Below are positions 19,993 to 60,500 of a DNA stretch of 64,000 nt, one piece after another. How positions within the stretch are numbered: position 1 is the first letter of the stretch; each line of letters opens with the position of its first letter. A model generated the notes under the pieces. The model ran no database searches and was not told the DNA's origin. It saw only the letters and a list, made by a program, of their open reading frames with translations. The stretch covers positions 63,302,001 through 63,366,000 of the forward strand of contig NW_027361690.1 in assembly GCF_039654945.1 (NCBI RefSeq). Direction: 5' to 3'. The DNA comes from Dendrobates tinctorius. Taxonomy: Eukaryota. The translations under genes were made by a program, and so were the position numbers.

Positions 19993-22765
19993 CACTACTC
20001 TTGATGTCATTGGAATCACTGAAACTTGGTGGGACAATACACATGATTGGAATACAAGACTAGAAGGATACAACTTATTTGCAAGAAACAGACTTGATAA
20101 ACGAGGAGGGGGTGTCGCATTGTATGTTCGAAACGCGTATATCTGCACAGAGATTGAAGCTTCAGAGACTGGGAGTTCTGTGGAAACTGTTTGGGTAAGA
20201 ATACAAGGACAGAACAATGGAAAGGACACCATTGTAGGCATTTACTACAGGCCGCCTGTGCAAGCCGAAGATATAGATGAACTCTTTATGCATCAGATGG
20301 CCAAGTTCTCCAAAAAATATGACATAGTTGTCATGGGAGATTTCAACTATCCAGACATTTGTTGGGAATCTCTCTCAGGCAAAACTAACAGGTCAAGGAA
20401 ATTCTTATCCTCTCTTGCTGACAACTTTATCTTCCAAAAGGTAAGGGAGAAAACAAGGGGAACTGCTACCTTGGATCTAATCCTTATAAACAGGGAGGAA
20501 ATGGTTGAGGAGGTAAAAGTGGCTGGGACCCTAGGAGGTAGCGACCATGCTATTTTAGAATTTTGGATAACTAGAGGTGGAAGACCTGTGAAGACTCAGA
20601 CGTCAAGGTTAGATTTCAGAAAGGCAGATTTTAAGGGATTCAGAAAGAGAATTGGAGGGATCCAATGGCTGGATATCCTTAAAGACAAAAATGTCCAGGA
20701 AGGATGGGAAATCTTGAAAAATGAAATTCTCAAAGCACAGTTGTTAACAATTCCGAAAAGAGGGAAGAATAGGAAGCATTTAAGGAAACCAGGATGGATG
20801 AACACAGAACTTAAGCACATGCTAAAAAGGAAGAAAAAAATGTTTATAAAATGGAAAGAGGGAGGCATATCTAAAGAAGAATATAATGCTGTCTGCAGAA
20901 CCTGCAGGGCACAAATCAGAATATCTAAAGCTGAAAATGAACTGAGGCTTGCAAGAGATGTCAAAAGCAATAATAAAGGATTTTGGGGATATGTCAAAAG
21001 TAAAAGAAAAGTCAAAGATGCTATAGGATTTTTACAGGATGAAAATGATGAAATGGTAAGACAGGATGTTGAGAAGGCTGAACTTTTAAATTCCTATTTT
21101 GCATCTGTTTTCTCTCAGAAAGGAAATGCAACATCAACTGTTATTCACTGTCCTATTAAGGGAATAGAAGAATCCAGGATATCTATAAACAGAAAGATAG
21201 TGAGGAAACACTTAGCTAACCTAAATGAATTCAAGTCTCCAGGTCCAGATGAATTACACCCCAGAGTACTGAAGGAGATAGCAGAAGAAATTTTTGAACC
21301 CCTCTCCATAATCTTTGAAAATTCTTGGAGAACAGGAGAAGTGCCAGAAGACTGGAGAAGAGCAAATGTTGTTCCTATCTTCAAAAAGGGGAAGAAGGTG
21401 GACCCAGGCAACTATAGGCCGGTGAGTCTGACTTCTATACCAGGAAAGATCTTTGAACAAATTATTAAACAACATGTATGTCAATACCTGGATAAGAATG
21501 AAGTGATTAAACAGAGTCAGCATGGGTTTGTAACTAATAAGTCATGTCAGACTAACTTAATTTCCTTCTATGACGGTATCACTGATTGGGTGGATCAAGG
21601 AAATGCTGTAGATATAGTATATCTTGACTTCAGCAAAGCATTTGACAAAGTCTCTCATACAATCCTTATTGAAAAAATGACTAAGTATGGAATGGACAAG
21701 GCAACTGTTAGGTGGATTCATAACTGGCTTAGTGATCGGACCCAAAGAGTGGTCGTAAATGGCTGCACATCCAGTTAGAAGAATGTCTCAAGTGGGGTAC
21801 CACAGGGCTCTGTCCTGGGCCCTGTATTGTTCAACATCTTTATCAACGATTTAGATGAAGGAATTGAGGGTAAACTGATTAAATTTGCTGATGACACAAA
21901 GCTAGGAGGGATAGCTAATACTAGAGAAGAGAGAGAGAGGATTCAAAAAGATTTAAATAAACTGGAGAAGTGGGCAGCAACTAACAGAATGGTTTTTAAC
22001 AGGGAGAAATGCAAAGTACTACATCTGGGCAATAAAAATGAAAAAAGCATATATAGAATGGGAGGAATAGGGCTAAGTGACAGCACATGTGAAAAAGACT
22101 TGGGTATACTAATAGATCACAGACTGAATATGAGTCAACAGTGTGATGTAGCAGCAAAAAAGGCAAATGCAATTCTAGGATGTATTAACAGAAGCATACA
22201 GTCTAGATCACGTGAAGTCATTATTTCCCTCTACTCCTCTTTGGTCAGACCTCATCTGGAATATTGTGTCCAGTTTTGGGCACCACATTTTAAAAAAGAC
22301 ATCAACAAACTGGAGCAAGTTCAGAAAAGAGCAACCAGAATGGTGACCGGTCTGCAAACCCTGTCTTATGAGGAAAGATTGCAGGATTTGGGAATGTTTA
22401 GTTTGCAAAAGAGAAGACTGAGAGGAGACTTAATAGCTGTCTACAAATATCTAAAGGGCTGTCACATTGTAGAAGGATCAACTTTATTCTCATTTGCACA
22501 AGGAAAGACTAGAAGCAATGGGATGAAACTGAATGGGAAGAGACTCAGATTAGATATTAGAAAAAACTTTTTGACAGTTAGAGTGATCAATGAGTGGAAC
22601 AGGCTGCCATGAGAAGTGGTGAGTTCTCCTTCAATGGAAGTCTTCAAACAGAGGCTGCACAGACATCTGACTGGGATGATTTAGCGAATCCTGCTTTGAG
22701 CAGGGGGTTGGACCAGATGGCCCAGGAGGTCCCTTCCGATTCTATGATTCTATGATTCTATGATT
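19993..22765 (+). mobile_element. CR1 LINE, near-complete ORF2 (APE endonuclease plus RT), 5'-truncated
   Basis: ITETWW, GDFN, SDH, FADD motifs. 20120-21778 and 21827-22612 are in the same frame, split by one TAG. (ATTCTATG)n tail. Confidence 0.97.
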
Positions 22766-23028: not shown

Positions 23029-23453
23029 GAGGCTCCACGGACTTTATTTGTGCATTCATATTTCCCAGGGAGCATTGCACCTAGGATTTCACTGATTGAG
23101 CGCCTTTGCTTTCTGCCGCAGTGTTTTCTTTGACTGGTCTCCCTGAGGTCAGTGATTGTTTCGTGATTTTGGTCTACTAGGCATTGCACCCACCTAGCCA
23201 GAATCCTACTCCACACTGATGAGGGGCAACACCCCGAAACAGCTGTCTGTGGATGGATACCTGGCCTTGGTATTTGCCTTGTCATATCTGTAAACTCGTA
23301 AAGAGCTGGATATTGACTTAAAGGGCCACTTAATATGGTGGTAATGGTGGTTTCCGAAAGGAGCCACCCCTTGGCTGGGTCCTTCCCTGGAGGAAGATCT
23401 GGCTAGTCCCGTTTTTGAGACTCTCAAATGAGGCTCCACGGACTTTATTTGTG
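23029..23453 (+). mobile_element. Retrozyme-like 401-nt unit with 24-bp terminal redundancy
   Basis: gaggctccacggactttatttgtg at 23029-52 and 23430-53; central canonical HHR; homologous to the 352-nt unit at 27867-28502. Confidence 0.75.
23210..23253 (+). ncRNA. Canonical minimal type I hammerhead ribozyme
   Basis: UCCACA-CUGAUGA-GGGG CAACA CCCC-GAAAC AGCU GUC|UGUGGA. Predicted cleavage after 23247. Confidence 0.93.
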
Positions 23454-24280
23454 TACCTCATATTGAAAGAACACATACTGAAAATAACAAATGATATACA
23501 TCAACTAAGAAAAATACATTAAATAAAGCCCAATATACTGTAGGTGAGTAATATATATTTGCTAGGTGGATGAATGGTGAACCATTCGGAAAAACACAGG
23601 GAACCAAGAGAGGATGTACCAAACCTGAGGTCCAAAGAAGAAGGTGTGGGACGAATGATGCAAGGATAAAAGTACCTTTATTAAACAAGAATGGTAAATG
23701 GTAGCACTGCATGCAAAGAAGTGCCCGCACTTGAATGAAAAACAATGATAAATAAACACGATAAAAAATAAATATTTATAAATGATGGATTATTCAAAAA
23801 CTAAAAACCCCTAGACCACTGAATGAAGATAGGGTATTCCAAGTAAGTGATAAGCCATATAATGACATTAGATGAATATTACAGTGAGTAGTAGGTGGTG
23901 ATAAACCCCCCCAAAAAATCATATGCATACATTGCCTGAAGCAAAAAAAGGGAGCAAAGATGTGGACAATGAAAGAGTGCCTCATGAGACATGATGAGTG
24001 TCAATCAAGTAAGTGACTGAGTAAGGATGAAAGACAAAAAAGGAGACCAAAGGTGTAAAAAGTGGAGCTACAATGCGGGTTAAAAAAATCATCCAGTAAA
24101 TATTGTTCACTGACCTTTTGAATGTGTATAGTGACAGCATTATATTGTTGGTTTTAAGTTCGTATTTTTGTACTGTTTAAAGATTTTTAATGTGTGCTGG
24201 TGTGAAAAATCTGAACCATGTGATGGAGGACGGGGTTTTTTGAATCCTTGGTCAATATAAAACCCTGACTCACTGGTATA

Positions 24281-24334
24281 ACACTAGGTTATGACTAAGG
24301 GGCGTATTTGGCCCTGAAACGTGTAAACCGGTGT
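24281..24334 (+). ncRNA. Minimal hammerhead ribozyme, A3:U8 core variant
   Basis: ACACUAGGUU-AUGACUA-A-GGGGC GUAUUUG GCCCU-GAAAC GU GUA|AACCGGUGU. TATAAAA about 25 nt upstream. Confidence 0.7.
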
Positions 24335-24768
24335 CTGGGACCTCTGCTATTTCTGCCATTTTTTTCTATTGTCGGTTGTCTATGCTTTATATGAAGATTT
24401 TGGAATAAAGTCAGTTGGAGTGCAACCTCTTTGTGCTGGATTTTTTACTACTAATAAAATGACTGTCACAAAATTAGCCAAAGGCGTACAAGTATATAGT
24501 CAGGAGAAGTGTTAATAATCAAACAGTAGGAAGACACTTGAATTGAGAAAGTGTCCTCGGAAGCAAGTATAGGTTAAAATGAATGATATAGAAGACACAG
24601 GTATATGGCATGGATGCAGAGGTCCACGTATGCTGGATGAATGAAAAAGTGAACGTGTCTCAAATATCAAGTTAATAAGTGGAGTCTAAATGAATGGGTA
24701 TATAATGAGGACAAAATAAAGGTGGCTCAACAAGCAGGGAGGAGATACCTGGGTGGTTCATAGTTTAC

Positions 24769-25006
24769 TAATAATAATAATAATCTTTATTTTTATATAG
24801 CGCTAACATATTCCGCAGCGCTTTACAGTTTGCACACATTATCATCATTGTCCCCAATGGGGCTCACAATCTAAATTCCCTATCAGTATGTCTTTGGAAT
24901 GTGGGAGGAAACCGGAGAACCCCCACACAAACACGGGGAGAACATACAAACTCCTTGCAGATGTTGTCCTTGGTGGGATTCGAACCCAGGATCCCAGCGC
25001 TGCAGC
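24769..25006 (-). mobile_element. tRNA-derived SINE (same family as 8560), 5'-truncated, L2-like tail
   Basis: B box gggttcgaatccc on minus; tail gcgctatataaaaataaag(att)n. Confidence 0.85.
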
Positions 25007-27866
25007 CTCTATCCACTGAGGTTCAAGTGCAGCGCACACCCCGACATGCATTTCAGAACATATCCTTCCTCAAGGTTCCTCATATTGAGTAAAGAAGCAT
25101 GGCTACATCCTAAATTGTAAATGGAAAAAGACCTAACACGCTAACACTCCATTTAACCCATATTGCTCTACAACCTCCGTTGTGAACAGGTAATTGAAGT
25201 AGGTTATCTGATGGAGAGAAGACATGAAATATGTACAAGAGGCTGGGAGGTGACACTTTTTACACTTTTTCTCTCCTGTGTAGACATGGCTTCCTATGTT
25301 CACAAGAATTAAAGGCAAACAGGACGGTAGCTGTTCAGTTATGAATATTTTTTTTTTGTGACCGGTGTATGTCTTATATTTATGGGAGACATATTTACTT
25401 ACAATACATTACTGTGTTGTCTATCTATACAAAGCTAAAATCATGATAAGAAATATGGCATTGATATCTCCCGTCTGGGACCTCTGGAGGACAGATATCT
25501 TTAAGTTCGAGGATCTTATAATTTTTGGTGCCTAAGTCATATCCCAACTATCAGCCACGATCTGAGGTCACCAAGCGGAGTGGCTTGAATCTGCTAAAAA
25601 CAGATTCTGAATTAATGCCAAGGATGATAGGGGATACAGCTTGTTGTAGGACTGCACCCATTTCCTACTTGGAGCACTCCCCTCCACAATAATCTATGTT
25701 ATTCTTGCAACATCAGGTCTAGTAAAGTTGTTTTGTTTAGTCTATTTTATTTTTATGCTATTATATACACTGTATGGTCTTGTCCCCTTTGTAATATCTT
25801 TTGCAAATGATCCCTATTTTTTAAATTAAATACATAAAGTTTAATAGCATTGTTCCTATAGCTCTATAAACAACACCCATGAAACTTTCCTTCATAACAG
25901 GCCAATTTTTTCAATTCTGACCAGTTTCAGTTTATGAAGTAATAACTCTGAAACGCTTAAACATATCCCACTGAGACTGTTTTTTTTTTAAACATATTGT
26001 ACTTCATTATAGTAGTAAAATTTGTTCGATATAACATGCTTTTATTTCTGAAAATATTGGAAATTTGGCCAAAATTTTGAAATGTTTGCAATTTTTTTTG
26101 TCAGGAAGTTAGAAGGGTTAAAAGGTGATCAGACAGTTTCTAATTTTTCCATAAAATAAGCAAAACCATTTCTTATGGTCCACCTCACATTTGAAGTGAC
26201 TTTAAGGGGCCTATATGACCGAAAATACCCAAAGGTGACACCATTCTAAAACTGCACCCCTCAAGGTGCTCAAAACCACATTCAAGAAGTTTATTAACCT
26301 TTCAGGTGCTTCACAGGGAATAATGCAATGTGGAATGAAATAAAAATAAAATGTAATGTTTTCCCACAAAAATAGGATTGCGGATACCATGTCATATTTG
26401 AAGAGCCCCTGACATGCCCAAACAGCAGAAACATCCACAAGTGGTCTATTTTGTAAACTACACCTCTTAGGCGGGAACACCCCTGCAGCTGGGGCTGCAC
26501 AGAGTGGATCCAGAAAAGCCACATGATGGGTAAGAAACCAAGGGTATGGGATGGTTTCATATGTACAGGGCTCTTTGATCTAAGCATGTAGTTTTTTGCA
26601 TTTGCCTTACCTTCCACCCTATATCTGTTGTTATCCCCTATTAGCATGATTATTATGCACTATACACTTTATTATATGATGGATGTGGTAATTTCTGGTT
26701 GGCGCACCGTTTTTCTACCTGCTTCTCCTGCTGAACATGTAATTGCTACTATTGTTGTAGTTCTGCTTGATGATTCTTTTATTTAAAAGAATTTCAGATT
26801 TTCATGCAATAAATTTCTATCTTTTTAGTCATTTCTGCACTTGGACTCCTCTTTTTCTTTTTGGTTTAAGTACCCCATAAGTTGTTGAAAGCTACTCTTG
26901 AGGCACAGTGCACAGCTCAGAGAGGAAGCTATATTACAGTGCAGATTTTGCTGTGCTGGTTTGAGGGTGCCATGTCACATTGGCAGATCTCCTGGGGTTC
27001 CAGAACAGAAGAAAACCCCATATGTGACCCCATTTGCAAACTACTCATCTCAATGAATTCATCTAGGGGTGCAGTGATCATATTAACACCATAGGTAGGT
27101 CACAAAATTTTATACCATTTGGCAGTGAAGAATAAATAATTATATTTTCACCACAAAAAAATTGTTTTAGCAACAGATTACATTTTCACACAGGAAAATG
27201 GGTATAAATTGTGCTAAAATGTGTCACACAATTTCTACTGAATGTGGCAATAGCCCATATGTGGATGTACAGTACTGCTTAGCCACACAGCGGGACTTGG
27301 GAGGGAAAGTGTTCTATTTGTCTGTTGGAGAACAAATTATTGTAGAATAGTATGCGGTCTTGATACACAAAGCCCCTAAATGCCAGAAGTGCAGAATCCC
27401 CCCTTCATTGACCCCATTTTGGAAATTACACCCCTCTGGGAATTTATCTACAGGTGCAGTGACTATTTTGACTCCAGCTCATGCTTCTGGAGACATGCAC
27501 CCATAAATTAGGTGAGCTCTCATAGCTACAGAAATGTCAAACGTGTGGTTTAGGCACACTGTGTGGCTCCGATGGGAGTGGGGCATTTGGATTTGGGAGC
27601 CAAGAATTTGTTGGATTTCGAGTGCGAGAAGCTAGAGCATTTTTACAGAGCTTTTGTACTACCAGTAACTTGGGAGCCCCCTATCTTTCCATTAACAAAT
27701 GGAAAGGGCTGGCGGAACGCACCAAATATTAAAAGATGGTAATAAGGTGCGTTCGCAGCCCGGGGTCCACCGTGCAGAGGTGGTAAACTGCTGCTCAGTA
27801 ATGGCGGACGCTATATGGCGGTATAATAGAAAAACATACGTGGGTTAGCGTCACCCGGTGTGTATA

Positions 27867-28502
27867 TGAAGAGGAGGATGAATGAACTCATGGAGATCAA
27901 CATCCGACACTGCAGAGACACCATCACGTGTTTCTCAGCGCAGTGATTCTAGAGCACTGCCCCCATCCCTTATGGGAAATATGTAAAACATGCAAAACAG
28001 AAGCCGCCGAGACACCATCACGTGTTTCTCAACGCAAGCAATGACCAGCCAGGTCTTTGCCCGGGAAGGAACAACCACGGGAAGGGCAGTCTCCAATGAA
28101 GGAAACCACCTATACCAAAACATGGTATCCATCCACATACAGCTGTTTCGGGGTATTGCCCCTCATCAGTGTGGAGTAGGAAACTGGCTGGTAGGAGCAA
28201 TGCCTAGTAAAAAGACTATGAAGAGGAGGATGAATGAACTCATGGAGATCAACATCCGACACTGTGGAGACACCATCACGTGTTTCTCAACGCAGTGATT
28301 CTAGAGCACTGCCCCCATCCCTTATGGGAAATATGTAAAACTTGCAAAACAGAAGCCGCGGAGACACCATCACGTGTTTCTCAACGCAAGCAATGACCAG
28401 CCAGGTCTTTGCCCGGGAAGGAACAACCACAGGAAGGGCAGTCTCCATTGAAGGAAACCACCTATACCAAAACATGGTATCCATCCACATACAGCTGTTT
28501 CG
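27867..28502 (-). mobile_element. Non-LTR retrozyme-like tandem (352-nt unit, about 1.8 copies)
   Basis: Period 352 (27866 vs 28218); HHR in each unit; flanked by GGTGTGTATA at 27857-66 and 28503-12. Confidence 0.85.
28132..28175 (-). ncRNA. Canonical minimal type I hammerhead ribozyme
   Basis: Minus: UCCACA-CUGAUGA-GGGG CAAUA CCCC-GAAAC AGCU GUA|UGUGGA. A 3' half copy lies at 28484-28504. Confidence 0.93.
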
Positions 28503-30565
28503 GGTGTGTATAGGGGCGGACTCTGTTGCTTCACAGAGCCACACTACCCCAGAACATAAATGCCGGAGCCTGTTTAAAGCTCACAGACATTGGCAAAGGA
28601 GCGCACAGAATGCAGTCACAGAACTCTGCCCCAAGCACACGGGGTCAGAGTCCTGCTAGACCTTCTGGGCGCGTGGTGTCGCACCTGCGGATGCCACTAT
28701 AGACGCTGACTATGGTGGAGTGTCGAGCACGTGCACCGTGGCGTGCAGAGCCAGCGGTGGACACTGATGCCAGGCTCAGACTCTGCCTCTACCTACACCT
28801 ATGCCTGGGCGCTTAACAGGCTAGGCTGCACAACACATGTGTACCAAGGGTAGGGGTTTCTTAATGAATCATTCACCATGCATGCAACACTCACTCCTCA
28901 TAGTCTGGTAATGCAGTCTATACTAGCGCATGGCCGAGTGGCCATGCAAACCTTTTATAGCAGCGTCCTTCCGGGACCTTCCTGACCTTTCTGATGGTCC
29001 AATCCGAGCTGGAGAAGGACCAGAGCATGTGACCTCCGATCGTCCCACGGGCATGCTCAGTGGACCAAAAGGAGGACTTAGTCCCTGGAGTAGCTCGCTG
29101 CTGACCAGCATGCGTTGCTATAGCTGGACCAGAGGTAGCAGCAGCTACCAAACCCACAGAGCTGGTCTGAGCAGAGTGCCGGGATCGACGAGTCTACTGA
29201 GCAGCCTCCTCTGTGGCTGGAGAGGAATGGGAAACTGCCGAATGCATGGCTCGGGATTCCTGCTGTGCAGCAACAGGGACCTGATGCCTAACAAGACCTG
29301 AGTGGAGGTTGTTTTTGTGAATTGAGTTGAAGCTTTTATTGGGAACATTTAATATAAAATTTTGGATCACATTTATCAGGCACTCTAAGATGAGCACTTA
29401 CTTTGGGATTTCCATCTAAATCTCTGAGTGAGATGATTCATATGAAATCCCCAAGGGATATATTCTCTTTGATGAGGCAGCAGAATTACTCCTTGAATCC
29501 GTCTGGCCCCTGTTCAGTGGTTTCCTTCTTTTCAGAAGTGCACAAAACTGTGTTGGATCGCACTTTTATGTAAGCCTGAAAAGATGGACACCACAGGCTC
29601 ACAGGTCCTATGGCGTCAACAGTGTCTCCATCTGCCTTATTATAGAGAATCTTCCTCTAGAGGTTTCGTCTGAATCACGTATTTCAGAAATTTACATGGA
29701 CACCCCGATGTAAGCGCTCAGCACAGAGAGCTGGAAAATTTGTGAGCCAAGCCTTACTGCAATCTTTGGGAGGCAGAATGAACAAATCAACAGTGGTTTT
29801 ATTTATTTTTTACGCTGTTCCTCAGTAGAAATGATAAGACAACTTTATTCTTTGGGTCGGTGCGATTACAGCGATACCAGATTTATATCTTTTTTTTATG
29901 TTTGGCTGCTGTTAAAAAAAAAAAAAAAAAAGCAAAAAGCATTTTTTAATGTGTAACAAAAATAAGATTTTGCATCACCATAATTATACAGCTATAATTT
30001 TTCCACATTTTCTTCCAACAGAGTCATGTGAGGGCTTGTTTTTTGTGGGACAAGTTGATATTTTTTTGGTACCATTTTCAAGCACATGATTTTTTTTAAT
30101 CAGTTTTATTTACATTTTTGTGAGACAGACTAAACTAAACAAAAACCAGCAATTTGGGAATAGTGTTTTTTTTTTTATTGCCATTCCGCATGTGGCAAAA
30201 TTGATAAAGCAGCTTTATTCTTCAGGTCAGTACTATTACAGAGATAGCACATTTTTATAGTTTTTTTTAGGTTTTGCCACTTTTGCACAATAAAAACTAT
30301 TTTGCAGGAAAAAAGAATTTTTTTTTAATCGTTTTATTCTGAAAGCTATAACTTTTTTATTTTTCCACTGCTTGAGTCGTATGGCAGCTTGTTTTTTGTG
30401 GGACAAGATGTTTTCATCGGTACCATTTTTACTTCCATTTAACTTTTGATTGCGCTTTATTCCACTTTTTGTTCGGCGGTATGATGAAAAAGCAAAGTGT
30501 TTTGCTACGTTCTTTTTTTTTTTTTTTTACAGTGTGCACAAAAGGAGTTAACTAGTGGGATAGCC

Positions 30566-43459: not shown

Positions 43460-45295
43460 TTCTGAGCTGTGTATCTAACCCTATCCTTTGTGATAAAGTC
43501 TGCTGAGCTGTGTACCTAATCCTCTCCTGTGTGATACTTTCTGCTGAGCTGTGTATTTAATCCTATAGTATTACTGACTGCTCAGCCGTGTATCTAATCC
43601 TCTCCTGTGTGATACTGACTGCTGAGCTGTGTATCTAATCCTATCCTGTATGATTCTGACTACTGAGCAGTGTATCTAATCCTATCCTGTGGATACTATT
43701 GAGGAGAAATAGCGCAATACTGCATTATCCAGTGTAGGTATATCAATTTAAAAATAGTACACTTACCAGATGAAGCTTGTAATAAGCATGGAGGATTCGC
43801 TGATGCAGGAACCACAGATCCACGAGGGACCGACATAGAAGATGCAGGATAGGAAAAAAGTGATCAGACAATCCGCGCTGCGAATCACTATAAACAATTA
43901 TTATTACAGTGGTCTTTATTCGACACGTTTCAAAGTTTCACAGAACTTCTTCCTCAGGAAGGAGGTCCTCAGGAGTTTTTCCTGAGGAAGGAGTTCTGTG
44001 AAACTTCGAAACGCGTCGAATAAAGACCACTAATAATAATTGTTTATAGTGATTCGTAACACGGATTGTCTGACCACTTTTTTCCTATCTTGCATAATCC
44101 TATCCTGTGTGATACCATCTGCTGAGTCGTGTATCTAACCCTATCCTGTGTGATACTGACTGCTGAGCCGTGTATCTAATCCTATACTGTGTGATACTGA
44201 CTGCTGAACCGTGTATTTAATCCTATCCTGTGTGATACTGTCTGCTGAGCTGTGTATCTAATCCTATACTGTGTGATACCGTCTGCTGAGCCATATATCT
44301 AACCCTATCCTGTGTGATACTGTGTGCTGAGCTGTGTATCTAATCTTATCCTGTGTGATACTGTCTGCTGAGCCATGTATCTATTCCTACCCTGTGTGAT
44401 ACTGACTGCTGAGCTGTGTATCTAATCCTATCCTGTGTGATACTGACTGCTGAGCCGTGTATCTAATCCTATCCTGTGTGATACCATCTGCTGAGCCATG
44501 TATCTAACCCTATCCTGTGTGATACTGACTGCTGAGCCGTGTATCTAATCCTATCCTGTGTGATACTGTCTGCTGAGCTGTGTATCTTATCCTATACTGT
44601 GTGATACCGTCTGCTGAGCCATATATCTAACCCTATCCTGTGTGATACTGACTGCTGAGCCGTGTATCTAACCCTATCCTGTGGGATACTGTGTGCTGAG
44701 CTGTGTATCTAATCCTATCCTGTGTGATACTGTCTGCTGAGCCATGTATCTATTCCAACCCTGTGTGATACTGACTGCTGAGCTGTGTATCTAATCCTAT
44801 CCTGTGTGATACTGACTGCTGAGCTGTGTATCTAATCCTATCCTGTGTGATACCATCTGCTGAGCCGCGTATCTAACCCTATCCTGTGTGATACTGACTG
44901 CTGAGCTGTGTATCTAACCCTATCCTGTGTGATACTGCGTGCTGAGCTGTGTATCTAATCTTATCCTGTGTGATACTGTCTGCTGAGCCATGTATCTATT
45001 CCTATCCTGTGTGATAATGACTGCTGAGCTGCGTATCTAATCCTATCCTGTGTGATACTGTCTGCTCAGCCGTGTATCTAATCCTATCCTGCTTGATACC
45101 GTCCGCTGAGCCATGGATCTATTCCTATCCTGTGTGATACTGACTGCTGAGCTGTGTATCTAATCCTATCCTGTGTGATACTGACTGCTGAGCCATGTGT
45201 CTAATCCTCTCTTGTGTGATACTAACTGCTGAGCTGTGTATCTAATCCTGTGTGATACTGACTGCTGAGCTGTGTATCTAATCCTATCCTTTTTG
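43460..45295. repeat. 41-bp minisatellite within the Helitron
   Basis: Unit tgctgagctgtgtatctaatcctatcctgtgtgatactg(t/a)c; interrupted at 43698-44095. Confidence 0.95.
43979..44020 (+). ncRNA. Minimal hammerhead ribozyme with a mirror copy on minus at 43919-43960
   Basis: UUC-CUGAGGA-A-GGAGUU CUGUGA AACUUC-GAAAC GC GUC|GAA. Predicted cleavage after 44017. Confidence 0.8.
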
Positions 45296-48199: not shown

Positions 48200-51000
48200 T
48201 TCTTATGCCGCTTGAACCGTGAACGATAATGAATGGAACATTAAACTAACATTGAAATACAGTCAAACTTCACTGGATTTTCTAGATTTATTAATTTCAA
48301 AATCAGCCACCGGATCAATTGAAACCGTTATTTTTCGCAAAACTACTGCGACTAATGCACTATTACATTTTTCATCTTCCCTTCCGCCTAAATTAAAAAG
48401 TTCCATTCCAGTCGGTCAATATCTGCGTGCCCGTCAAATTTTTTCAGATGACACCACGTTTGCCAAACAGGCTAAAGAGCTTTCTGGTTGCTTCAAAAAT
48501 AGGGGTTACCTTAATAGGGATATCGCGAGAGGCTATACCCGCGCATTGAATTCTGAGAGATCAGCCTTGCTGACCTCTGCTTCCAGGAACAGGAACAGAA
48601 AAATTGAGAACCCTATTCCTAGGTTTATTACCAAATTTAATTGTAACTGGAAAGAGATAAATAGAATTTTGAGGCAGCATTGGTCGGTCCTGTTAACCGA
48701 TAAAGATCTAAGGCAACAACTGACACCATATCCAGCTGTCACGTGGCGTAGATCATGCAACATGAGTGACATTTTGTGCAATAGCCACTATATACCTCCT
48801 AAAACTAATCCTTTTGCTACTGTCAGGAAGGGCCCCCTTTGGGGTTGCTTCCCCTGTGGTGACTGCTCTGCCTGTCCATATATCTCTAGGACCAAAGAAT
48901 TCTCTAACTTCGGAAATAAAGTCTATAAACTTGTCCACCACATTACATGCAACACGGAGGCAATAGTCTATCATGCCAGCTGCCCTTTTGGCCGCATCTT
49001 TACTGGCATGACTACTCGAACTCTCAAAGTCCGTGTGCAAGAACATGTGCAAAACATCAAAAATGCGGCTAATTGTTCCGATCCAGGTTCTTTGAAAACG
49101 ATCCCTAAACACTTTTTTGAAACCCATCACAGTAATCCTAAGGGGTTTACTGTTTGTGGAATTGATCACAATTATATGGGCATCCGTGGGAGAAAAAACT
49201 TCTGCAAAAAAAAAAAACCCGCTGGATGGTCATATTGGATTCTCTTATGCCAAATGGCCTTAATGAGGCCATCAGCTTCAAGTCTTTTCTTTGATTATTT
49301 TTTGTATTTGTTTGTTATTTTATGTTGGCAGTGCTATATAGGTTTTATACTTATTTCCTTTTTTCCTCTTTTCTCATTCAGTAGATATTGATATACTATT
49401 ACCATTTGTATGCTGTTCATATGGGTTTCTTCACCTCTTTGGATTTGATCCCTATCATTAGACTACAAATCACCTTTTCAGCATACTATTGACCTTGATC
49501 CAACTGGCAGTTGTGTTTTGGCTTTGAAAGACTTTATATCGTCTTGTCTCTGGATATTGTGGACATAATTACAATAATATATTCGGCATTTTTGTAATAA
49601 CCTTACTTTGGTATAGTAAATGAATCTTTGTCATTAATGTGCTCATCAATATTTTTATTATGTAATTTTATCCTATCTGGGCTAAAACCCATGAATTTAT
49701 ATAACTATATGATATTGGTTTTCTATCAGCCTTTATCTAGGCCGTTAGGCACATTAGTTATCTTTACCTGTCCTGATGTCCATGCAGCATTTGTTATTTA
49801 TACTCAGTACATCTCTATTTGATTTATTATGAAACATTTTCTGAGTTCTAGTCCTTATACAGTTATCATGCTGTTATGTTATGGTTTATATATAATTCTG
49901 TCTTTCATGTCTTGGATTGTATTTTTCTCCACTCTCTCCTAGCCATATATGACACCTACAATATATACATAACTGTTGTACCAGGTTGCCTTGGCGACTG
50001 GGGGCGGTACGAGAAGAGAGATAAATAACATCCGTCAGTGTTTTTCCATATGATTTATAGATGTTATTTATATATGCTCATTTGATATTTGTCATTTATA
50101 TACTTTGATTAATGTGCCGCGCCGTTATTATGGCGCTGCAATTTGCTAGCTTTGCCATTGAGATGATGAGTGACGTATTTTCTTTTCATTATCCACCACG
50201 GGCACTACTTCACTCCACTATGGGGTGGCGCCTTACGCTGAGACATAGCTAGATTTATATATCCGGCTGTGATGCCTGCTTGGGTCTTTCTGCGCAGACG
50301 CGACTCGCGCATGTGCTGTGCCGTGGCCGTGGCTTTGTGTGCTGGTGGCATTGCCGTGGTGATGGCAAGAGATGAAGCACGTCCTCCTTCCCATCATTGA
50401 TTGCGGGCGTGGGCGCACTCTGCCAGGGGGCGGTGCATCACTCCTAGTTACGCGCCGATTCATGGATGTACCTCTTCTTCCCGCTGTCTTTCATTGTTAA
50501 CCACGCCTCCTGACAAAGCCGGGTGCGGTGAAACGCGTGTCGAGGATCTCGTACATCTCCCCTATGCTCCTGCACTGGCAACTACAGTATGTCTCAAGGT
50601 AATGTGCAGACCAGTCTTATTATAACTCTACTTGGTTGACACACTGCATTTGCACTTTATTTTTGGATATCTTTCTGGGACTGCTAACCATGAAATTCAT
50701 ATAGACTCTAGCCACTTATTAAATATGCAGCACTATTGGGGAATGCGTATTTCTTTTGTATTATTTTACCATCATATATACTACCTATATGTTTGGCTAA
50801 CTTTCTCTGAATACCCTGTCTATTTTAGATTAATGATGCAATAAAATTGACTATTTTACTAAAACGACCCCTATTTTCTTTTTCCTTCATTTTTTATTAT
50901 TATGCTAATTTAATTGAAATTGTAGTGAATCTACTAGGACCTTTTACATCTAGGTTCTATTTTTCTTTTTTCTTTGGTTATTATACACTGGCTTAGGGGT
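48200..51000 (+). mobile_element. Second Penelope-like element (Neptune type), 5'-truncated: RT thumb, Cys cluster, GIY-YIG and pseudo-LTR
   Basis: ORF 48219-49391: FLDLLI, SIPVGQYLR, CFPCGDCSAC, IVYHASC..FTGMTTR..VQEH. HHR at 50506. Confidence 0.9.
50506..50545 (+). ncRNA. Hammerhead ribozyme (CpG-decayed) in Penelope pseudo-LTR
   Basis: CCUC-CUGACAA-A-GCCG GGUG CGGU-GAAAC GCGU GUC|GAGG. G8 is changed to A. Confidence 0.7.
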
Positions 51001-53794: not shown

Positions 53795-55791
53795 CCAGTA
53801 ATGCCTTGCGCCTTAGACCGGAGATGATGTCACTCTCGCGAGAGCGCAACGTCATCAGCAGTGTTTCGCGCAAAGCATTACTGGGACCGTGAGGCCGGGA
53901 GCGTAGAAGGAGATCGCGGGCCATCAGAAGGTGCGTATATAACTATTTTTTATTTTAACAGAGACCATGAAAACCAGGAAAGGGGGGTGACGGGACCATG
54001 CATACCAGGAAAGGGGGGTGAGGGTGACCATGCATACCAGCAAAGGGGGGTGAGGGTGACCATACATACCAGCAAAGGGGGGTGAGGGTGACCATGCATA
54101 CCAACAAAGGGGGGTGAGGGTGACCATGCATACCAGAAAAGGGGGGAGGGGGACCATGCATACCAGCAAAGGGGGAGGGGGGCCATGCATACCAGCAAAG
54201 GGGGGTGAGGGTGACCATGCATACCAAGAAAGGGGGTGAGGGGTACCATGCATACCAAAGGGGGGGGACCATGCATACCAGCAAAGGTGGGTGAGGGTGA
54301 CCATGCATACCAGGAAAGGGGGGTGAGGGTAACCATTCATACCAGGATAGGGGGTGAGGGTGACCATGTATACCCGGAAAGGGAGTTGAGGGGACCATGC
54401 ATACTAGGAGAGGGGGGTGAGGGTAACCATGCATACCAGGAAAGGGGGGTGAGGGTGACCATGCATACCAGGAAAGGGGGGTGAGGAGGACCATGCATAC
54501 CAGCAAAGGGGGGGAGGAGGACCATGCATACAAGCAATGGGGGGAGGGGAACCATGCATACCAGCAAAGGGGAGGAGGACCATGCATACCAGCAAAGGGG
54601 GATGAGAGTGACCATGCATACCAAGAAAGGAGGGTGAGGGTGACCATGCCTACCAGGATAGGGGGGTGAGGGTGACCATGCATACCAGGAAAGGTGGGTG
54701 AGGGGGACCATGCATACCAGGAAAGGTGGGTGAGGGGGACCATGCATACCAGGAAAGGGGGGGACCATGCATACCAGCAAAGGTGGGCGAGGGTGACCAT
54801 GCATACCAGGAAAGGGGGGTGAGGGTGACCATGCATACCAGGATAGGGGGTGAGGGTGACCATGTATACCAGGATAGGGAGGTGAGGGGACCATGCATAC
54901 CAGGAAAGGGAGGTGAGGGGACCATGCATACCAGGAAAGGGGGATGACGGGACCATGTATACCAGGAAAGGGGGGAGAGGGGGACCGTGCATTCCTGGAA
55001 AGGGGGGTGAGGGGACCATGCTTACCAGGAAAGGGAGGTGAGGGGACCATGCATGCCAGGACAGATAGGTGGGGTGACCACGCATACCAGGAAAGGGAGG
55101 GGAGGGGACCATGCATGCCAGGAAAGGGGGTGATGGGACCATGCCTACCAGGAAAGGGGGGTGAGGGGGACCATGCATACCAGGAAAGGGGGGTGAGGGG
55201 ACCATGCATGTCAGGATTGGGGCATGAGGGTACCAAGCATACCAGGAAATGGGGGTGACGGAATCATGCATACCAGGAAAGGTGGTGAGGGGGATCATGC
55301 ATATCAGGATTGGGGAGTGAGGGGACCATGCATGTCAGGATTGGGGCGTGAGGGTACCAAGCATACCTGGAAATGGGGGTGACGGAACCATGCATACCAG
55401 GAAAGGGGGTGAGGGGACCATTCATACCAGGAAAGGGGGTGAGGGGACCAAGCTTACCTGGAAAGAGGGGTGAGAGGACCATGCATACCAGGAAAGGGAG
55501 ATGAGGGGTACCATGCATATCAGGATTGGAGGGTGAGAGGAGAATGCATATCAGGATTGGGGGTGAGGGGACCATGCATATTAGGATTGGGGGGTGAGGG
55601 GACCATGCATACCAGGATGGGGGGGAGGGGTACCATGCATATCAGGATTGGGGGGGTGAGAGGACCATGCATATCAGGATTGGGGGGTGCATTATTATTT
55701 TTATTATTATTATTATTATTAATAAACTTAATAAATAAACTACATACATATTCTAGAATACCAGATGCGTTAGAATCGGGCCACCATCTAG
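53795..55791 (+). mobile_element. Non-autonomous Helitron 3' part
   Basis: Hairpin ccagat-gcgttaga-atcggg, then CTAG|T at 55791. 5' boundary uncertain. Confidence 0.6.
53960..55690 (+). repeat. G-rich minisatellite, ~30-33-bp unit
   Basis: Unit ccatgcataccaggaaaggggggtgagggtga, roughly 55 copies. Confidence 0.95.
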
Positions 55792-55799
55792 TTTTATAT

Positions 55800-56148
55800 A
55801 ACACTCCATTGTTCCGAATGGTCATGGTCAGACACATTTTCAGGCCATCCACAAATTCCTGCATTACACCAATAATGCACAGTGTCCCCCATGAGATGAC
55901 CCCAACTTTGACCGTCTGCTCAAAGTTCGGCCAGTCATCGAACACTTCAACAAAAAGTTTGCTGAAGTGTACGTGCTCCAAAGGGACATCTGCGTGGATG
56001 GGTCCTCAGTCCATTTTAAGGGAAGGCTCGGATTCCATCAGTACCTGCCCAGCAAGAGGGCCAGGTACGGAATCAAACTCTACAAACTGTGTGAGAGTAC
56101 CTCAGGGTACACCCACAGGATTAGAGTGTACGAAGGAAATGACACCAG
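55800..56148 (+). pseudogene. piggyBac (PGBD4-like) transposase fragment
   Basis: ICVDGSSVHFKGRLGFHQYLPSKRARYGIKLYKLCESTSGY. Confidence 0.85.
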
Positions 56149-56934
56149 TAGAGATGAGCGACTTTGCCTTTTTTCGGGTCGAGTCGGGTTTCATGAAACC
56201 AGACTTTCACAAAAGTCGGGTCAAACGAAATCGGCCGATTATCGTGAAAAGTCGAAGGCCAACTGAAACACGAAACCCAATGCAAGTCAATGGGGAAGAA
56301 AAGTCGGCAGTGAGTGGAGGATAGGAAACACACCTACAGTGCCCATTTTAATGCCAAAACCATCAATTCTTATTACTTAAGCTTGTCATCCTTAAGGAAT
56401 CCCTGTACTAGTCTGGACTCCTCGTTGTCCCCATCTTCCATCTCTCTGCACTTGGACTCTTTAGGCAGAGGGCATACAGACGTGATGTCATCGCGCTCTC
56501 TGACCAGAATGTCACTGTCAGGAAAGACATCACGGCGGTGGAGGAGGGAGAGGTAAGTATTTCAACTTCGCAAGTGCTGTGATCCTGAGCAAGCAGGGGG
56601 GCCCACTCATTGGTGACAGCACTGGCACAGGGACCCTCATAGTACGGCGGTGTGTCTGACGGCGTGTGGGCCCTCCCACCGGCAGAGACACTTTTGGGTA
56701 CAATGCGGGGCCCTGTGCCATCGCCCATGAGTATGCCCCCCCACCTGCACAAGCAACCTGCACTTTCATCTGCATCTTCCTCTTTGTCACCGTGTAAGGT
56801 AGTATAGTATGCGGGAAAGTTAACCTGAGTTTCATCAGGGTCAGATTCTGCCTGTGTAGAGTGCGAGGGGAATGTAGTGGTCTTGGTCAATGTACCAGCA
56901 GAATCATCTAGCAGTGGCTGGGCATCAGTGCACT

Positions 56935-57555: not shown

Positions 57556-60500
57556 TGTGACGTCCGCCTGTGGGTCTGGGCTGCAGCCAGGCAACACCCC
57601 GAGAAACACTGATACCCTTTACCCCTATACAGGGATCTGGATTTATAGCAGAGCCCAGGAGGCGCTGTCTGAATAGGAGCAGTGACCAGAGCAGGACGGT
57701 CGCCAGAAAGGTGTTCCAATACGGGACACAAACGTGGAGATATGCAAGTCTAAACCAGTCGGGCAGCAATGGTACAAAATACGGTAGACAGAAGCAGAGT
57801 CAGATTCAGGCCAAGAGTCATAAACCAGGAGAGTAGCAGAGGTACAGAATCGTTAGGCAGAAGCAGAGTCAGATTCAGGCCAAAAGTCATAAACCAGGAG
57901 AGTAGCAGAGGTACAGAATCATTAGGCAGAAAGAGAGTCAGAAGTCCAGGCCAAAGTCAGTCAGTCAGTCAGTCATAAAGTAATTCACACAGTAACACAC
58001 AGGGGAACCAAGAATATATCCGGCGGCTTGCAAGACCAGTCCCAAGGTATTTCAGGGATCAGGTCACCCCTCATAGGTTCCTGTACTGATGATGTCATCA
58101 GTACCGCCCCCAGGACCAGGCCAGATGGAGATGCAGTAACCTCTTGATGACTGACAGAGGGGTGGAGCCTGCGTCCACCAGATGCCTGCGCCGGTGCCCT
58201 TACTCTGTCAGCACCATAACTCCCGGGCGAGCCATGGCACCTCCTAGTGACCGCGACAGGAGCAGCAGACCCAGAATTTAACGGCGACGTGACAGACCGG
58301 CGCCTCCTAGAGGCTAAAGCCGAGACAGTAGGCTCTGAGCCTGACGTGACAGAACCACGGCCCCTTCCAGTGGCCGAGGCAGGAACAGCCGTCCCTGAGT
58401 CTGACGATAAAGTGGCGGTCCGGAGCCTCCTAGTCTCCGCGACCGGAACAGCAGGCCCTAAGTCTGGCGGAAACGTGACAGTACCCCCCCTCCAAGAGGG
58501 GCCTCCGGACCCTCAAAACCCGGTTTATCAGGGTGAAGGAGGTGAAACCTTCTAATCAACCCCTTGGCATGAATGTCACTAGCGGGGACCCAGGACCTCT
58601 CCTCTGGGCCATAGCCTTTCCAATGAACTAAATATTGCACAGACTTTCTCACTAAACAGGAATCAAGGATGCCCTGGACTTCGTACTCCAAGGCACCCTT
58701 GACCAAAACTGGAGGAGGAGGGGACTGGGCAGGATGAATTGGGGAGCGGTACACCTTGAGAAGGGATTTGTGGAAAACATTAGGAATTTTAAAAGACTGA
58801 GGGAGCCTTAAACGAAAGGCTACCGGGTAAATTACATCTAATATCTCGTAGGGACCAATAAACCTGGGCCCCAGTTGGGCAGATGGCACCTTAAGCTTTA
58901 TGTTTCTGGTAGACAGCCAAACTTTGTCCCCAACTCCTAGGTGCGGCCCCGTGGACCTCCGTTTATTTGCGGCCAAAGCCTGCCTGACCTGGGACCCTTT
59001 CAAGTTTGTGTTCACCTCCGACCAGATTGTCCTTAAGTGACGTATGGAATTCTCCACTCCCGGAAGCTCCGACATCTTGGCCGAAAATGAACCAAAACGT
59101 GGGTGCAAACCATGATTGCAGAAGAACGGGGTGGTTTTGATAGATTCCTGGTACTGGTTATTTAGAGCGAACTCAGCTAATGGGAGATGTTCCGCCCAAT
59201 CAGACTGATGTTCCGAGACATAGCAGCGAAGATATTGCTCTAGAGCCTGGTTGGTACGCTCCGTTTGACCATTGGTCTCAGGGTGGTAAGCGGAGGAGAA
59301 GGATAATTCAATACCAATACGTTTGCAGAATGCTCTCCAGAATTTGGAAACAAACTGGGTACCTCGGTCGGACACGATATTCTCTGGAGTGCCATGCAGC
59401 CTTATTACATGAACAATAAACAACTTACTCAGAGTTTCTGAATTAGGTAATCCAGAGAGGGGAACGAAATGACATTGCTTACTGAACCTGTCCACCACCA
59501 CCCAGATACATGTCTTCCCCTCTGAGGGTGGTAGGTCAGTAATGAAGTCCATGGAGATGTGGGTCCATGGACTCTCTGGAGCGGGCAAGGACTGGAGCCA
59601 GCCGGCAGGCCGATTGTGAGGGGACTTGGCGCGAGCACAGATTTCACAAGCTAGTACATAATCCTTGCAGTCCTTAACTACCATTGGCCACCAAAAACTC
59701 CTAGTCACAAGTCTGGCGGTATTATTGACCCCAGGATGGCCTGCCAGGACGGAGTCGTGCGACTCCTTCAGAACTTGTAGGCGAAACGGCGCTGGAACAA
59801 ACAATTTCTGGGGGGGCGTCGAGTCAGGGGCTGGTTCTGGGGACCTACGGATCTCCTCCAGAAGGTCCAGAGACACAGCCGACACAACAATACCATTGGC
59901 CAGTATTGGAACTGGCTCCGAGTCCTCAGCCTGTGAGGGGCAGAAACTTCGAGAGAGAGCATCAGCCCTCACATTTTTGGTACCAGGACGAAAGGTTATT
60001 AAGAAATCAAACCTAGAGAAGAACAAGGCCCACCTCGCTTGTCTAGGATTTAATCTTTTAGCTGACTCCAGGTAAGTCAGATTCTTGTGATCTGTAATCA
60101 CAGTGATCTTATGTTTGGCGCCTTCGAGGAAGTGGCGCCATTCCTCGAAGGCCCATTTGATCGCCAATAACTCCCGATTACCTATATCGTAATTCTTCTC
60201 AGTGGCAGAGAATTTGCGGGAGAAAAAGGCACATGGGCGAAGCTGAGTGAGTGATGCAGTGCCTTGCGACAGCACTGCTCCCACTCCGACCTCAGAGGCG
60301 TCCACCTCTACAATAAACGGGCGGTCCAGATCAGGCTGAACCAAAACTGGGTTGGCTACAAAGCACTCTTTTAACGTAGCAAAAGCCTGAATTGCCTCAG
60401 GGTTCCAATTGGTCACGTCTGCCCCTTTTCGGGTCAAATCCGTGAGTGGTTTAGCAATTTCGGAGAAACCCCTGATGAATTTTCGGTAATAATTTGCAAA

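Follow-up and report, generated by a model that had tools for sequence, protein, structure and literature searches.

Non-long terminal repeat (non-LTR) retrozymes are a published kind of hammerhead retroelement. Amphibian retrozymes are 330-353 nt long, have a weak helix III, act as dimers and are predicted to be highly self-paired, with compact folds in which the ribozyme is free to form (PMC7229834). They give rise to abundant linear and circular RNAs, and ligation is probably carried out by tRNA ligase (PMC7229834). Retrozymes are present in 7 of 7 amphibian genomes sampled, and Xenopus families are linked to the pseudo-long terminal repeats (pLTRs) of Penelope elements (bioRxiv 10.64898/2026.07.22.740005). 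The structural evidence in these two studies consists of minimum-energy predictions at most, with no comparative structure test. Here, two elements, termed A and B, are described in a 64,000-nt stretch of DNA from Dendrobates tinctorius (contig NW_027361690.1, positions 63,302,001 to 63,366,000; hereafter the window), which is vertebrate, frog-like DNA rich in retroelements. With a probability of about 0.8, A and B belong to two related amphibian non-LTR retrozyme families, as inactive copies in the genome, and in this they are further members of a described kind.

Two related hammerhead elements

A search of the window for the hammerhead core found exactly two sites, 23216-23240 on the plus strand and 28169-28145 on the minus strand, each inside a repeat. 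The two repeats and their main parts are as follows.

23029-23453, plus strand: element A, one 401-nt retrozyme unit in about 1.06 copies
27865-28504, minus strand: element B, a 352-nt tandem unit in 1.82 copies
27857-27866 and 28503-28512, no strand assigned: 10-nt direct repeat GGTGTGTATA at the ends of element B, read directly from the sequence
23274-23345, plus strand: A-specific 72-nt insertion relative to B, between two hairpins 3' of the ribozyme
23206-23256, plus strand: type I hammerhead of A, matched over the full model by Rfam RF00163 (20 bits, E 0.005, under the gathering score)
28129-28179, minus strand: the sole complete hammerhead of B, from the core pattern search and Rfam

Element A has a 24-nt exact terminal overlap (23029-23052 is identical to 23430-23453), which is possibly 35 nt long at 91% identity. 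The units of element B are 97.6% identical over 288 nt, and the 5' end of B in the RNA sense is truncated inside a hammerhead. The target-site duplication of B is truly 6-10 bp, the outer bases of the 10-nt repeat overlapping element sequence. The terminal points of A and B fall at different permutations of the unit, which fits copying from a circular or multimeric template. Because the copies have permuted ends and are longer than one unit, and because B is bracketed by a target-site duplication, insertion through an RNA intermediate is supported, in line with what is described for retrozymes (PMC7229834).

Both elements have the size and type of non-LTR retrozymes, which are non-coding, about 170-400 nt long and tandem and have one type I hammerhead; A is a monomer. 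Their GC contents are 48.7% and 48.9%, lower than 50% as in such elements. They have neither LTR, primer-binding site nor polypurine tract, no terminal repeats beyond the unit itself were found in A or B, and the duplication, where present, is longer than 4 bp. Only short mechanical open reading frames (ORFs) overlap element B. The predicted RNAs are highly self-paired and would leave the ribozyme free to fold, again as in the published kind.

The catalytic core is intact in both elements. Within the pattern CUGANGA...GAAA with an NUH triplet, A and B have CUGAUGA, GAAA and GUC or GUA, respectively, at the expected spacing. In A, helix I is formed by 23206-23215 with 23248-23256, the core CUGAUGA lies at 23216-23222, helix II is formed by 23223-23226 with 23232-23235, GAAA occupies 23236-23239, and the cleavage site GUC is after 23247. 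In B, helix I is formed by 28179-28170 with 28137-28129, the core lies at 28169-28163, helix II is formed by 28162-28159 with 28153-28150, and the cleavage site GUA is after 28138. The topology is that of type I, in which helices II and III are closed and helix I is open via the flanks. In both ribozymes, helix II has 4 bp and a 5-nt loop, helix III has 2 bp and an AGCU loop, and helix I has 9 bp with one bulged C. The predicted ligation junction joins GUC (A) or GUA (B) to UGUGGAUGG. The core pattern is absent from the complementary strand of both elements, and the ribozyme is present on one strand only. Because the helix III loop region ACAGCUGU is self-complementary (palindromic), two ribozymes could form a double hammerhead. 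By analogy with the described amphibian ribozymes, cleavage by that of A and B would most likely involve a double hammerhead within multimeric transcripts.

A 99-nt block spanning the ribozyme and its flanks is 89% identical between A and B by BLAST. A and B are collinear over the whole unit in a global alignment, with about 80% identity over 313 columns and liberal gaps; identity is 62% with MAFFT. MAFFT puts the hairpin H2 described below in the wrong place across the 72-nt insertion of A; most tests used an anchored pairwise alignment, and both are reported. BLAST within the window detected no copies besides A, B and the partial unit of B, so that the comparative sample is 2.8 copies (A plus the units of B). 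Metagenome, viral and prokaryotic genome collections, scanned for exact patterns, returned zero homologues of A or B, and six metagenome loci (L001-L006) have the ribozyme core alone in common with them. The literature text has motifs of A and B in no relevant context. At the level of sequence, the reading of A and B as copies of two related hammerhead retroelement families is supported, as a first-pass annotation of this DNA had proposed.

Among described elements, axolotl Rtz331/Rtz353 (HHR_Amex1/Amex2; Cervera & de la Pena 2020, PMC7229834) resemble A and B in having an amphibian host, no coding capacity and a GC content below 50%. Their unit is about 330-353 nt long, and that of B is 352 nt. 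They contain a type I hammerhead in which helix III is very short and capped by a tetraloop, as in A and B, they occur as tandem or single copies, and their RNA, like that of A and B, is predicted to be highly self-paired. The cloned Ax353 has a GUA cleavage site, like B. However, comparison by eye with the supplement of PMC7229834 revealed no evident similarity of Ax353 to A or B outside the ribozyme core. Helix II of A and B has a clean G-C base, whereas that of Amex2 has U.U. Furthermore, the host of A and B is a frog and the axolotl is a salamander, and A and B are known here from DNA alone whereas the axolotl RNAs are expressed. In frogs, the Xenopus study reported 57 retrozyme families across species, with an amphibian mean consensus of 316 bp (Li, Clavereau & Pollet 2026, bioRxiv 10.64898/2026.07.22.740005). 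Those families occur as dispersed monomers, and many copies are monomeric, like A.

Satellite 2 of newts and salamanders, as far as it is described through PMC7229834, is a tandem hammerhead repeat of about 330 bp, similar in size to A and B. Its ribozyme is weak on its own and cleaves in dimeric form, and the palindromic helix III loop of A and B would allow a double hammerhead. However, satellite 2 forms long arrays in that account, whereas A and B are dispersed copies of 1.06 and 1.8 units, one of them with a target-site duplication. Because of this dispersal and duplication, A and B are read as retrotransposed copies. The RNAs of plant LTR retrozymes and Avsunviroidae are likewise small circles processed by hammerheads and folded into compact, branched structures, similar to what is predicted for A and B (PMC4918200, PMC9695139). 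However, their ribozymes are of type III and those of A and B of type I, and plant retrozymes have LTRs, primer-binding sites and polypurine tracts and 4-bp duplications, whereas A and B have no LTR (PMC4918200, PMC9695139). Viroids have ribozymes in both polarities and no DNA stage, in contrast to the single-strand ribozyme and genomic DNA copies of A and B.

Other hammerhead-like sequences were seen in this work. A near-perfect palindrome at 43900-44080 of the window has a right arm bearing a hammerhead-like core, CUGAGGA...CGAAAC; this core, at 43982, was rejected as a relative of A and B as it has no similarity to either. In the metagenome contig TBL_comb48_EPIDRAFT_1068898 (L006), 156-206 and 755-805 on the minus strand belong to a 599-nt tandem repeat with a hammerhead core per unit. 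This repeat looks like a retrozyme of another eukaryote and is unrelated to A and B outside the core. The metagenome locus L002 has a similar spacing of 546 nt and is likewise unrelated outside the core.

The predicted fold around the ribozyme

The helices and hairpins considered outside the ribozyme are H1 to H4. The part of the fold closed by H1 is called the hammerhead ribozyme (HHR) domain.

23194-23202, plus strand: closing helix H1 of A, 5' strand CUAGCCAGA, pairs with 23398-23406 (pair probability 0.55-0.71)
23398-23406, plus strand: closing helix H1 of A, 3' strand UCUGGCUAG, partner of 23194-23202
28184-28192, minus strand: closing helix H1 of B, 5' strand ACCAGCCAG, pairs with 28052-28044 (probability about 1.0)
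28044-28052, minus strand: closing helix H1 of B, 3' strand CUGGCUGGU, partner of 28192-28184
23346-23368, plus strand: hairpin H2 of A, the GGUGGUUUCC hairpin, made of GGUGG(U)UUCC, a GAAA loop and GGAGCCACC
28085-28110, minus strand: hairpin H2 of B, the GGUGGUUUCC hairpin, with a 10-bp stem, three G.U pairs and the loop UUCAUU
23257-23273, plus strand: hairpin H3 of A, made of AUACC, a 7-nt loop and GGUAU (pair probability 0.26)
28112-28128, minus strand: hairpin H3 of B, made of AUACCA, a UGUUU loop and UGGUAU (pair probability about 1.0)
28193-28207, minus strand: helix H4 of B, 3' strand CUAGGCAUUGCUCCU, pairs with 28316-28301 (probability about 1.0)
28301-28316, minus strand: helix H4 of B, 5' strand GGGGGCAGUGCUCUAG, partner of 28193-28207
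23177-23191, plus strand: copy in A of CUAGGCAUUGCACCC, the 3' strand of H4, by sequence match
23068-23084, plus strand: homologue in A of the strand that pairs with CUAGGCAUUGC in B (H4), read directly from the alignment

All motifs and helices listed by the first-pass annotation were recovered by sequence look-up. These are the helix strands CCAGCCAG (28191-28184, minus strand) and CUGGCUGG (28052-28045) of B, the strands of H1 of A at 23194-23202 and 23398-23406, the GGUGGUUUCC hairpins at 28110-28085 and 23346-23368, and CUAGGCAUUGC, CAUAUUUCCCA and CCUUCCC in both elements. By our own estimate, at 62-80% identity over more than 300 aligned columns, a stretch of 11 identical nt such as CAUAUUUCCCA is unremarkable. 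Circular folding, which the annotation had suggested as a check, produced a branched fold in both elements, with stronger helices in B than in A. The annotation had also placed an AUACC...GGUAU hairpin after the ribozyme and a partner strand for CUAGGCAUUGC in both. The hairpin sequence does lie directly 3' of both ribozymes, but its pair probability contrasts between A (just 0.26) and B. The partner strand holds for B. In A, however, the complementarity of 23068-23084 to 23177-23191 is interrupted by an A.A mismatch, a U.U mismatch and a 2-nt bulge.

In the circular fold of B, H1, H2, H3 and H4 all have a pair probability of about 1.0. In that of A, the inner part of H2 reaches 0.58-0.87 and its outer stem is paired in the minimum free energy (MFE) structure. 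H4 is not formed in the MFE fold of A, and CUAGGCAUUGC has no well-defined partner there (at most 0.26, and to a different strand). The circular MFE folds of both elements include helix I, helix II, H1 and H2, and 63-66% of the bases are paired. The HHR domain of both elements consists of a closing helix of 8-9 bp around two or three hairpins. H4 of B directly adjoins H1 on the same strand, and the two are possibly coaxial. The H3 stem is invariant between A and B, and the loop bases differ at 4 of 7 positions. The H2 loop of B reads UUCAAU in the other copy of B.

The stability of these folds was expressed as z-scores of folding energy against dinucleotide shuffles. For the whole unit, z is -4.17 (B) and -2.47 (A) in the sense strand and -3.19 (B) and -1.62 (A) in the antisense strand. 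The domain closed by H1 has sense z-scores of -4.55 (B) and -4.45 (A). The ribozyme-free stretch from the ribozyme to the 3' strand of H1 has sense z-scores of -3.81 (B) and -3.77 (A), with antisense values of -1.80 and -2.64, respectively. Such a sense-strand bias is better explained by an RNA structure containing G.U pairs than by a DNA palindrome. The 72-nt insertion of A alone gives two self-contained hairpins (z -2.95). The RNAalifold circular consensus of A and B has an energy of -53.7 kcal/mol, compared with -32.0 +/- 5.6 for column-shuffled alignments. Without the ribozyme, the consensus is at -41.05 against -22.2 +/- 4.2, and 0 of 200 shuffles are as low. These folding models support a branched, thermodynamically well-supported fold around the ribozyme, predicted to be shared by the sense-strand RNAs of A and B. 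By the same models, no structural conservation between A and B is seen in the distal half of the circle.

A motif of about 29 nt, GUUGAGAAACACGUGAUGGUGUCUC, also occurs twice per unit of B, at a spacing of 94 nt, at 28009-28036, 27912-27942, 28360-28388 and 28266-28294 on the minus strand. The motif contains the palindrome CACGTG. Within B its two copies do not differ, whereas the corresponding segments of A have diverged. This suggests that an internal duplication took place long ago and that the copies in B were homogenised or constrained.

Covariation and the rival explanations

The two families differ in H1 by one pair that is changed on both sides and still paired (C-G in B, U-A in A) and by two end pairs, one unique to A and the other to B. 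In a plain sequence alignment, a 1-nt indel can also account for the difference between the 5' strands of H1. In H2, pairing survives two one-sided transitions as G.U, the loss of one base has left a U bulged, and the loop is replaced. In H4, a compatible change is accompanied by a double change that produces A.A and a single change that produces U.U. The named helices together contain about 4 compatible events and 3-5 incompatible ones. A single compensatory pair was found among the 30 named pairs, and its covariation score is equalled by 258 of 500 shuffles. When the minimum-energy fold of B is mapped onto A, 10 changed pairs still pair and 16 break; in the opposite direction, 9 still pair and 22 break. 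Pair survival outside the ribozyme was assessed by a permutation test that retains the substitution spectrum, in four alignment-by-direction set-ups. From B to A with the anchored alignment, 62 of 78 pairs survive against 54.8 +/- 3.0 expected (P = 0.011). Substitution rates differ weakly between paired and unpaired columns (18.6% vs 28.6%, Fisher P = 0.07). The 7 differences between the B1 and B2 units comprise 2 unpaired positions, 3 that keep pairing and 2 that break it. By the standard of R-scape and Rfam, no significantly covarying pairs outside the ribozyme were found in the 2.8 copies, which give minimal power. Because there are only 2.8 copies, covariation cannot be shown from the window, and the first-pass description of the structure as covarying does not hold: one compensatory pair carries no statistical weight, H4 is degraded in A, and compensatory changes are not in excess.

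The reading of A and B as inactive copies of two retrozyme families draws directly on their intact ribozyme cores, whole-length homology, fold stability, permuted ends, copies of more than one unit and the duplication around B. Several results, however, weigh against it or against a conserved fold. A scores 20.0 bits with the full-length type I model RF00163 (E 0.005) against a gathering score of 34, the best Rfam match of B is 16.6 bits to the type III model RF00008, and Rfam at gathering thresholds gives no match anywhere in the window. These low scores are probably explained by the short helix III of amphibian motifs. A target-site duplication was looked for at the ends of A, and none was found. 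Each locus has one complete ribozyme and cannot release unit-length RNA, and A and B are for that reason dead copies. The structure conservation index of the RNAalifold consensus is 0.43. In that consensus, 67 of 73 pairs are invariant and there are 2 two-sided changes, where shuffling gives a mean of 2.9-3.3. Double changes are kept or broken at a ratio of 1/2 from B to A and 3/2 from A to B, a total of 4/4. The other three non-ribozyme set-ups of the pair-survival test gave P = 0.14-0.43.

How much of the shared fold reflects selection is judged differently by two rival explanations. It has been considered that the fold outside the ribozyme is under purifying selection with genuine covariation and that a viroid-like RNA is itself replicating. 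The one C-G to U-A exchange in H1, the wobble-compatible changes and wholly replaced loop of H2, the restriction of H3 substitutions to the loop, the bias of stability to the sense strand and the pair survival from B to A in one set-up (P = 0.011) all agree with this. However, this explanation is improbable: H4 has two disruptive mismatches in A, compensatory change is not in excess, neither the reverse transfer test nor the MAFFT alignment yields a signal, and 2.8 copies have no power, as illustrated by the 258 of 500 shuffles that match the observed covariation. Furthermore, because the complementary strand has no ribozyme, there is no basis for symmetric rolling-circle RNA replication of the Avsunviroidae type, and a DNA stage is evident from the duplication around B and from the DNA copies as such. 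The first-pass annotation had read a viroid-like fold under selection and RNA, rather than DNA, as the replicating unit. The shared stable sense-strand fold stands, whereas selection on it is what we infer; a fold does not warrant the conclusion that RNA is the replicating unit, and viroid-like RNA-to-RNA replication has no support, with the ribozyme on one strand only.

The shared helices may instead be merely inherited, sitting in the most conserved blocks with no structural selection outside the ribozyme. Stability would then come from composition, history or sequence constraints such as protein-binding or promoter motifs. This explanation, rather unlikely but less so than the preceding one, accounts for the invariance of 67 of 73 consensus pairs, for the weak difference between paired and unpaired substitution rates (P = 0.07) and for the distal half that is not structurally conserved; H3 as a whole and the 5' strands of H1 and H2 are located in or beside the 99-nt, 89%-identical block. 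It is harder to reconcile with the z-score of about -3.8 of the ribozyme-free inner region in both families, which is weaker in antisense, and with the self-folding of the 72 nt newly gained by A (z -2.95), which points to a general self-pairing pressure. All changes in H1 and H2 also keep pairing, except the bulged U of H2 and one H1 end pair per family. A third explanation concerns the identity of the elements, which could be fragments of pLTRs of autonomous Penelope-like elements and not independent retrozymes. Xenopus retrozyme families are sister to Penelope pLTRs (bioRxiv 10.64898/2026.07.22.740005). However, no Penelope reverse transcriptase or GIY-YIG ORF lies beside A or B, the neighbouring ORFs at 20120-22612 belong to a long interspersed nuclear element (LINE), the duplication of B brackets the 1.8-mer alone, and the rest of the window bears no resemblance to A or B. 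Such an origin is very improbable.

On the preferred reading of A and B as inactive retrozyme copies, tandem transcripts of such elements would be cut to unit length by the type I hammerhead, acting as a dimer as the literature suggests. The unit-length RNA would be circularised, with ligation by a host tRNA ligase, and the circle would be copied back to DNA by a reverse transcriptase supplied in trans, for which the literature points to Penelope-like or LINE enzymes. In the predicted HHR domain, H1 would close a multi-branch loop carrying the ribozyme, H3, the GGUGGUUUCC hairpin H2 and a small CUUCC hairpin, and the additional 72 nt of A would fold on itself at the domain junction. The domain may be kept as a compact fold that makes the circle more stable without hindering formation of the ribozyme. 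Judged from the folding models, it is probably maintained for this compact fold, a step at which we infer selection.

Genomic neighbourhood and significance

The window contains several other retroelement sequences. The two ORFs (20120-21778 and 21827-22612) of a LINE at 20120-22765 on the plus strand encode an apurinic/apyrimidinic endonuclease and a reverse transcriptase. At 22738-22765, 126 nt 3' of the LINE ORF, 3.5 copies of the 8-nt repeat GATTCTAT form an array that looks like a CR1-type tail. This array ends 264 nt before A, and the idea that A was carried or templated by the neighbouring LINE was therefore rejected. Between the two retrozymes, a tRNA-like segment at 24965-25030 on the minus strand scores 21.6 bits with the Rfam tRNA model, under threshold, and may be the head of a tRNA-derived short interspersed nuclear element. 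A Ty3/gypsy-type pol at 58458-62376 on the minus strand consists of two overlapping ORFs of 812 and 517 amino acids and encodes protease, reverse transcriptase, RNase H, integrase and a chromodomain. Long ORFs without a Pfam match are located at 48219-49391 (plus strand), 53955-55298 (minus strand) and 55470-56324 (plus strand). The latter two sit in a GC-rich stretch (51-55% GC, 54-60 kb).

Animal retrozymes are abundant, and a shared fold would bear on what their circular RNAs need beyond the ribozyme. The window yields a specific hypothesis, in which H1, H2 and H3 at the coordinates given above form part of a functional module; the window alone does not establish such a module. It is tentatively suggested, at somewhat less than even odds, that the HHR domain is selected in frog retrozymes as a module for circularisation, stability or recognition by reverse transcriptase, with self-folding insertions tolerated at its junction. 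If this is true, the HHR domain would be the first structure of animal retrozymes, apart from the ribozyme, to be supported by covariation. The conserved closing helix and hairpins would then give targets for mutagenesis directed at circularisation, stability and reverse transcriptase recognition.

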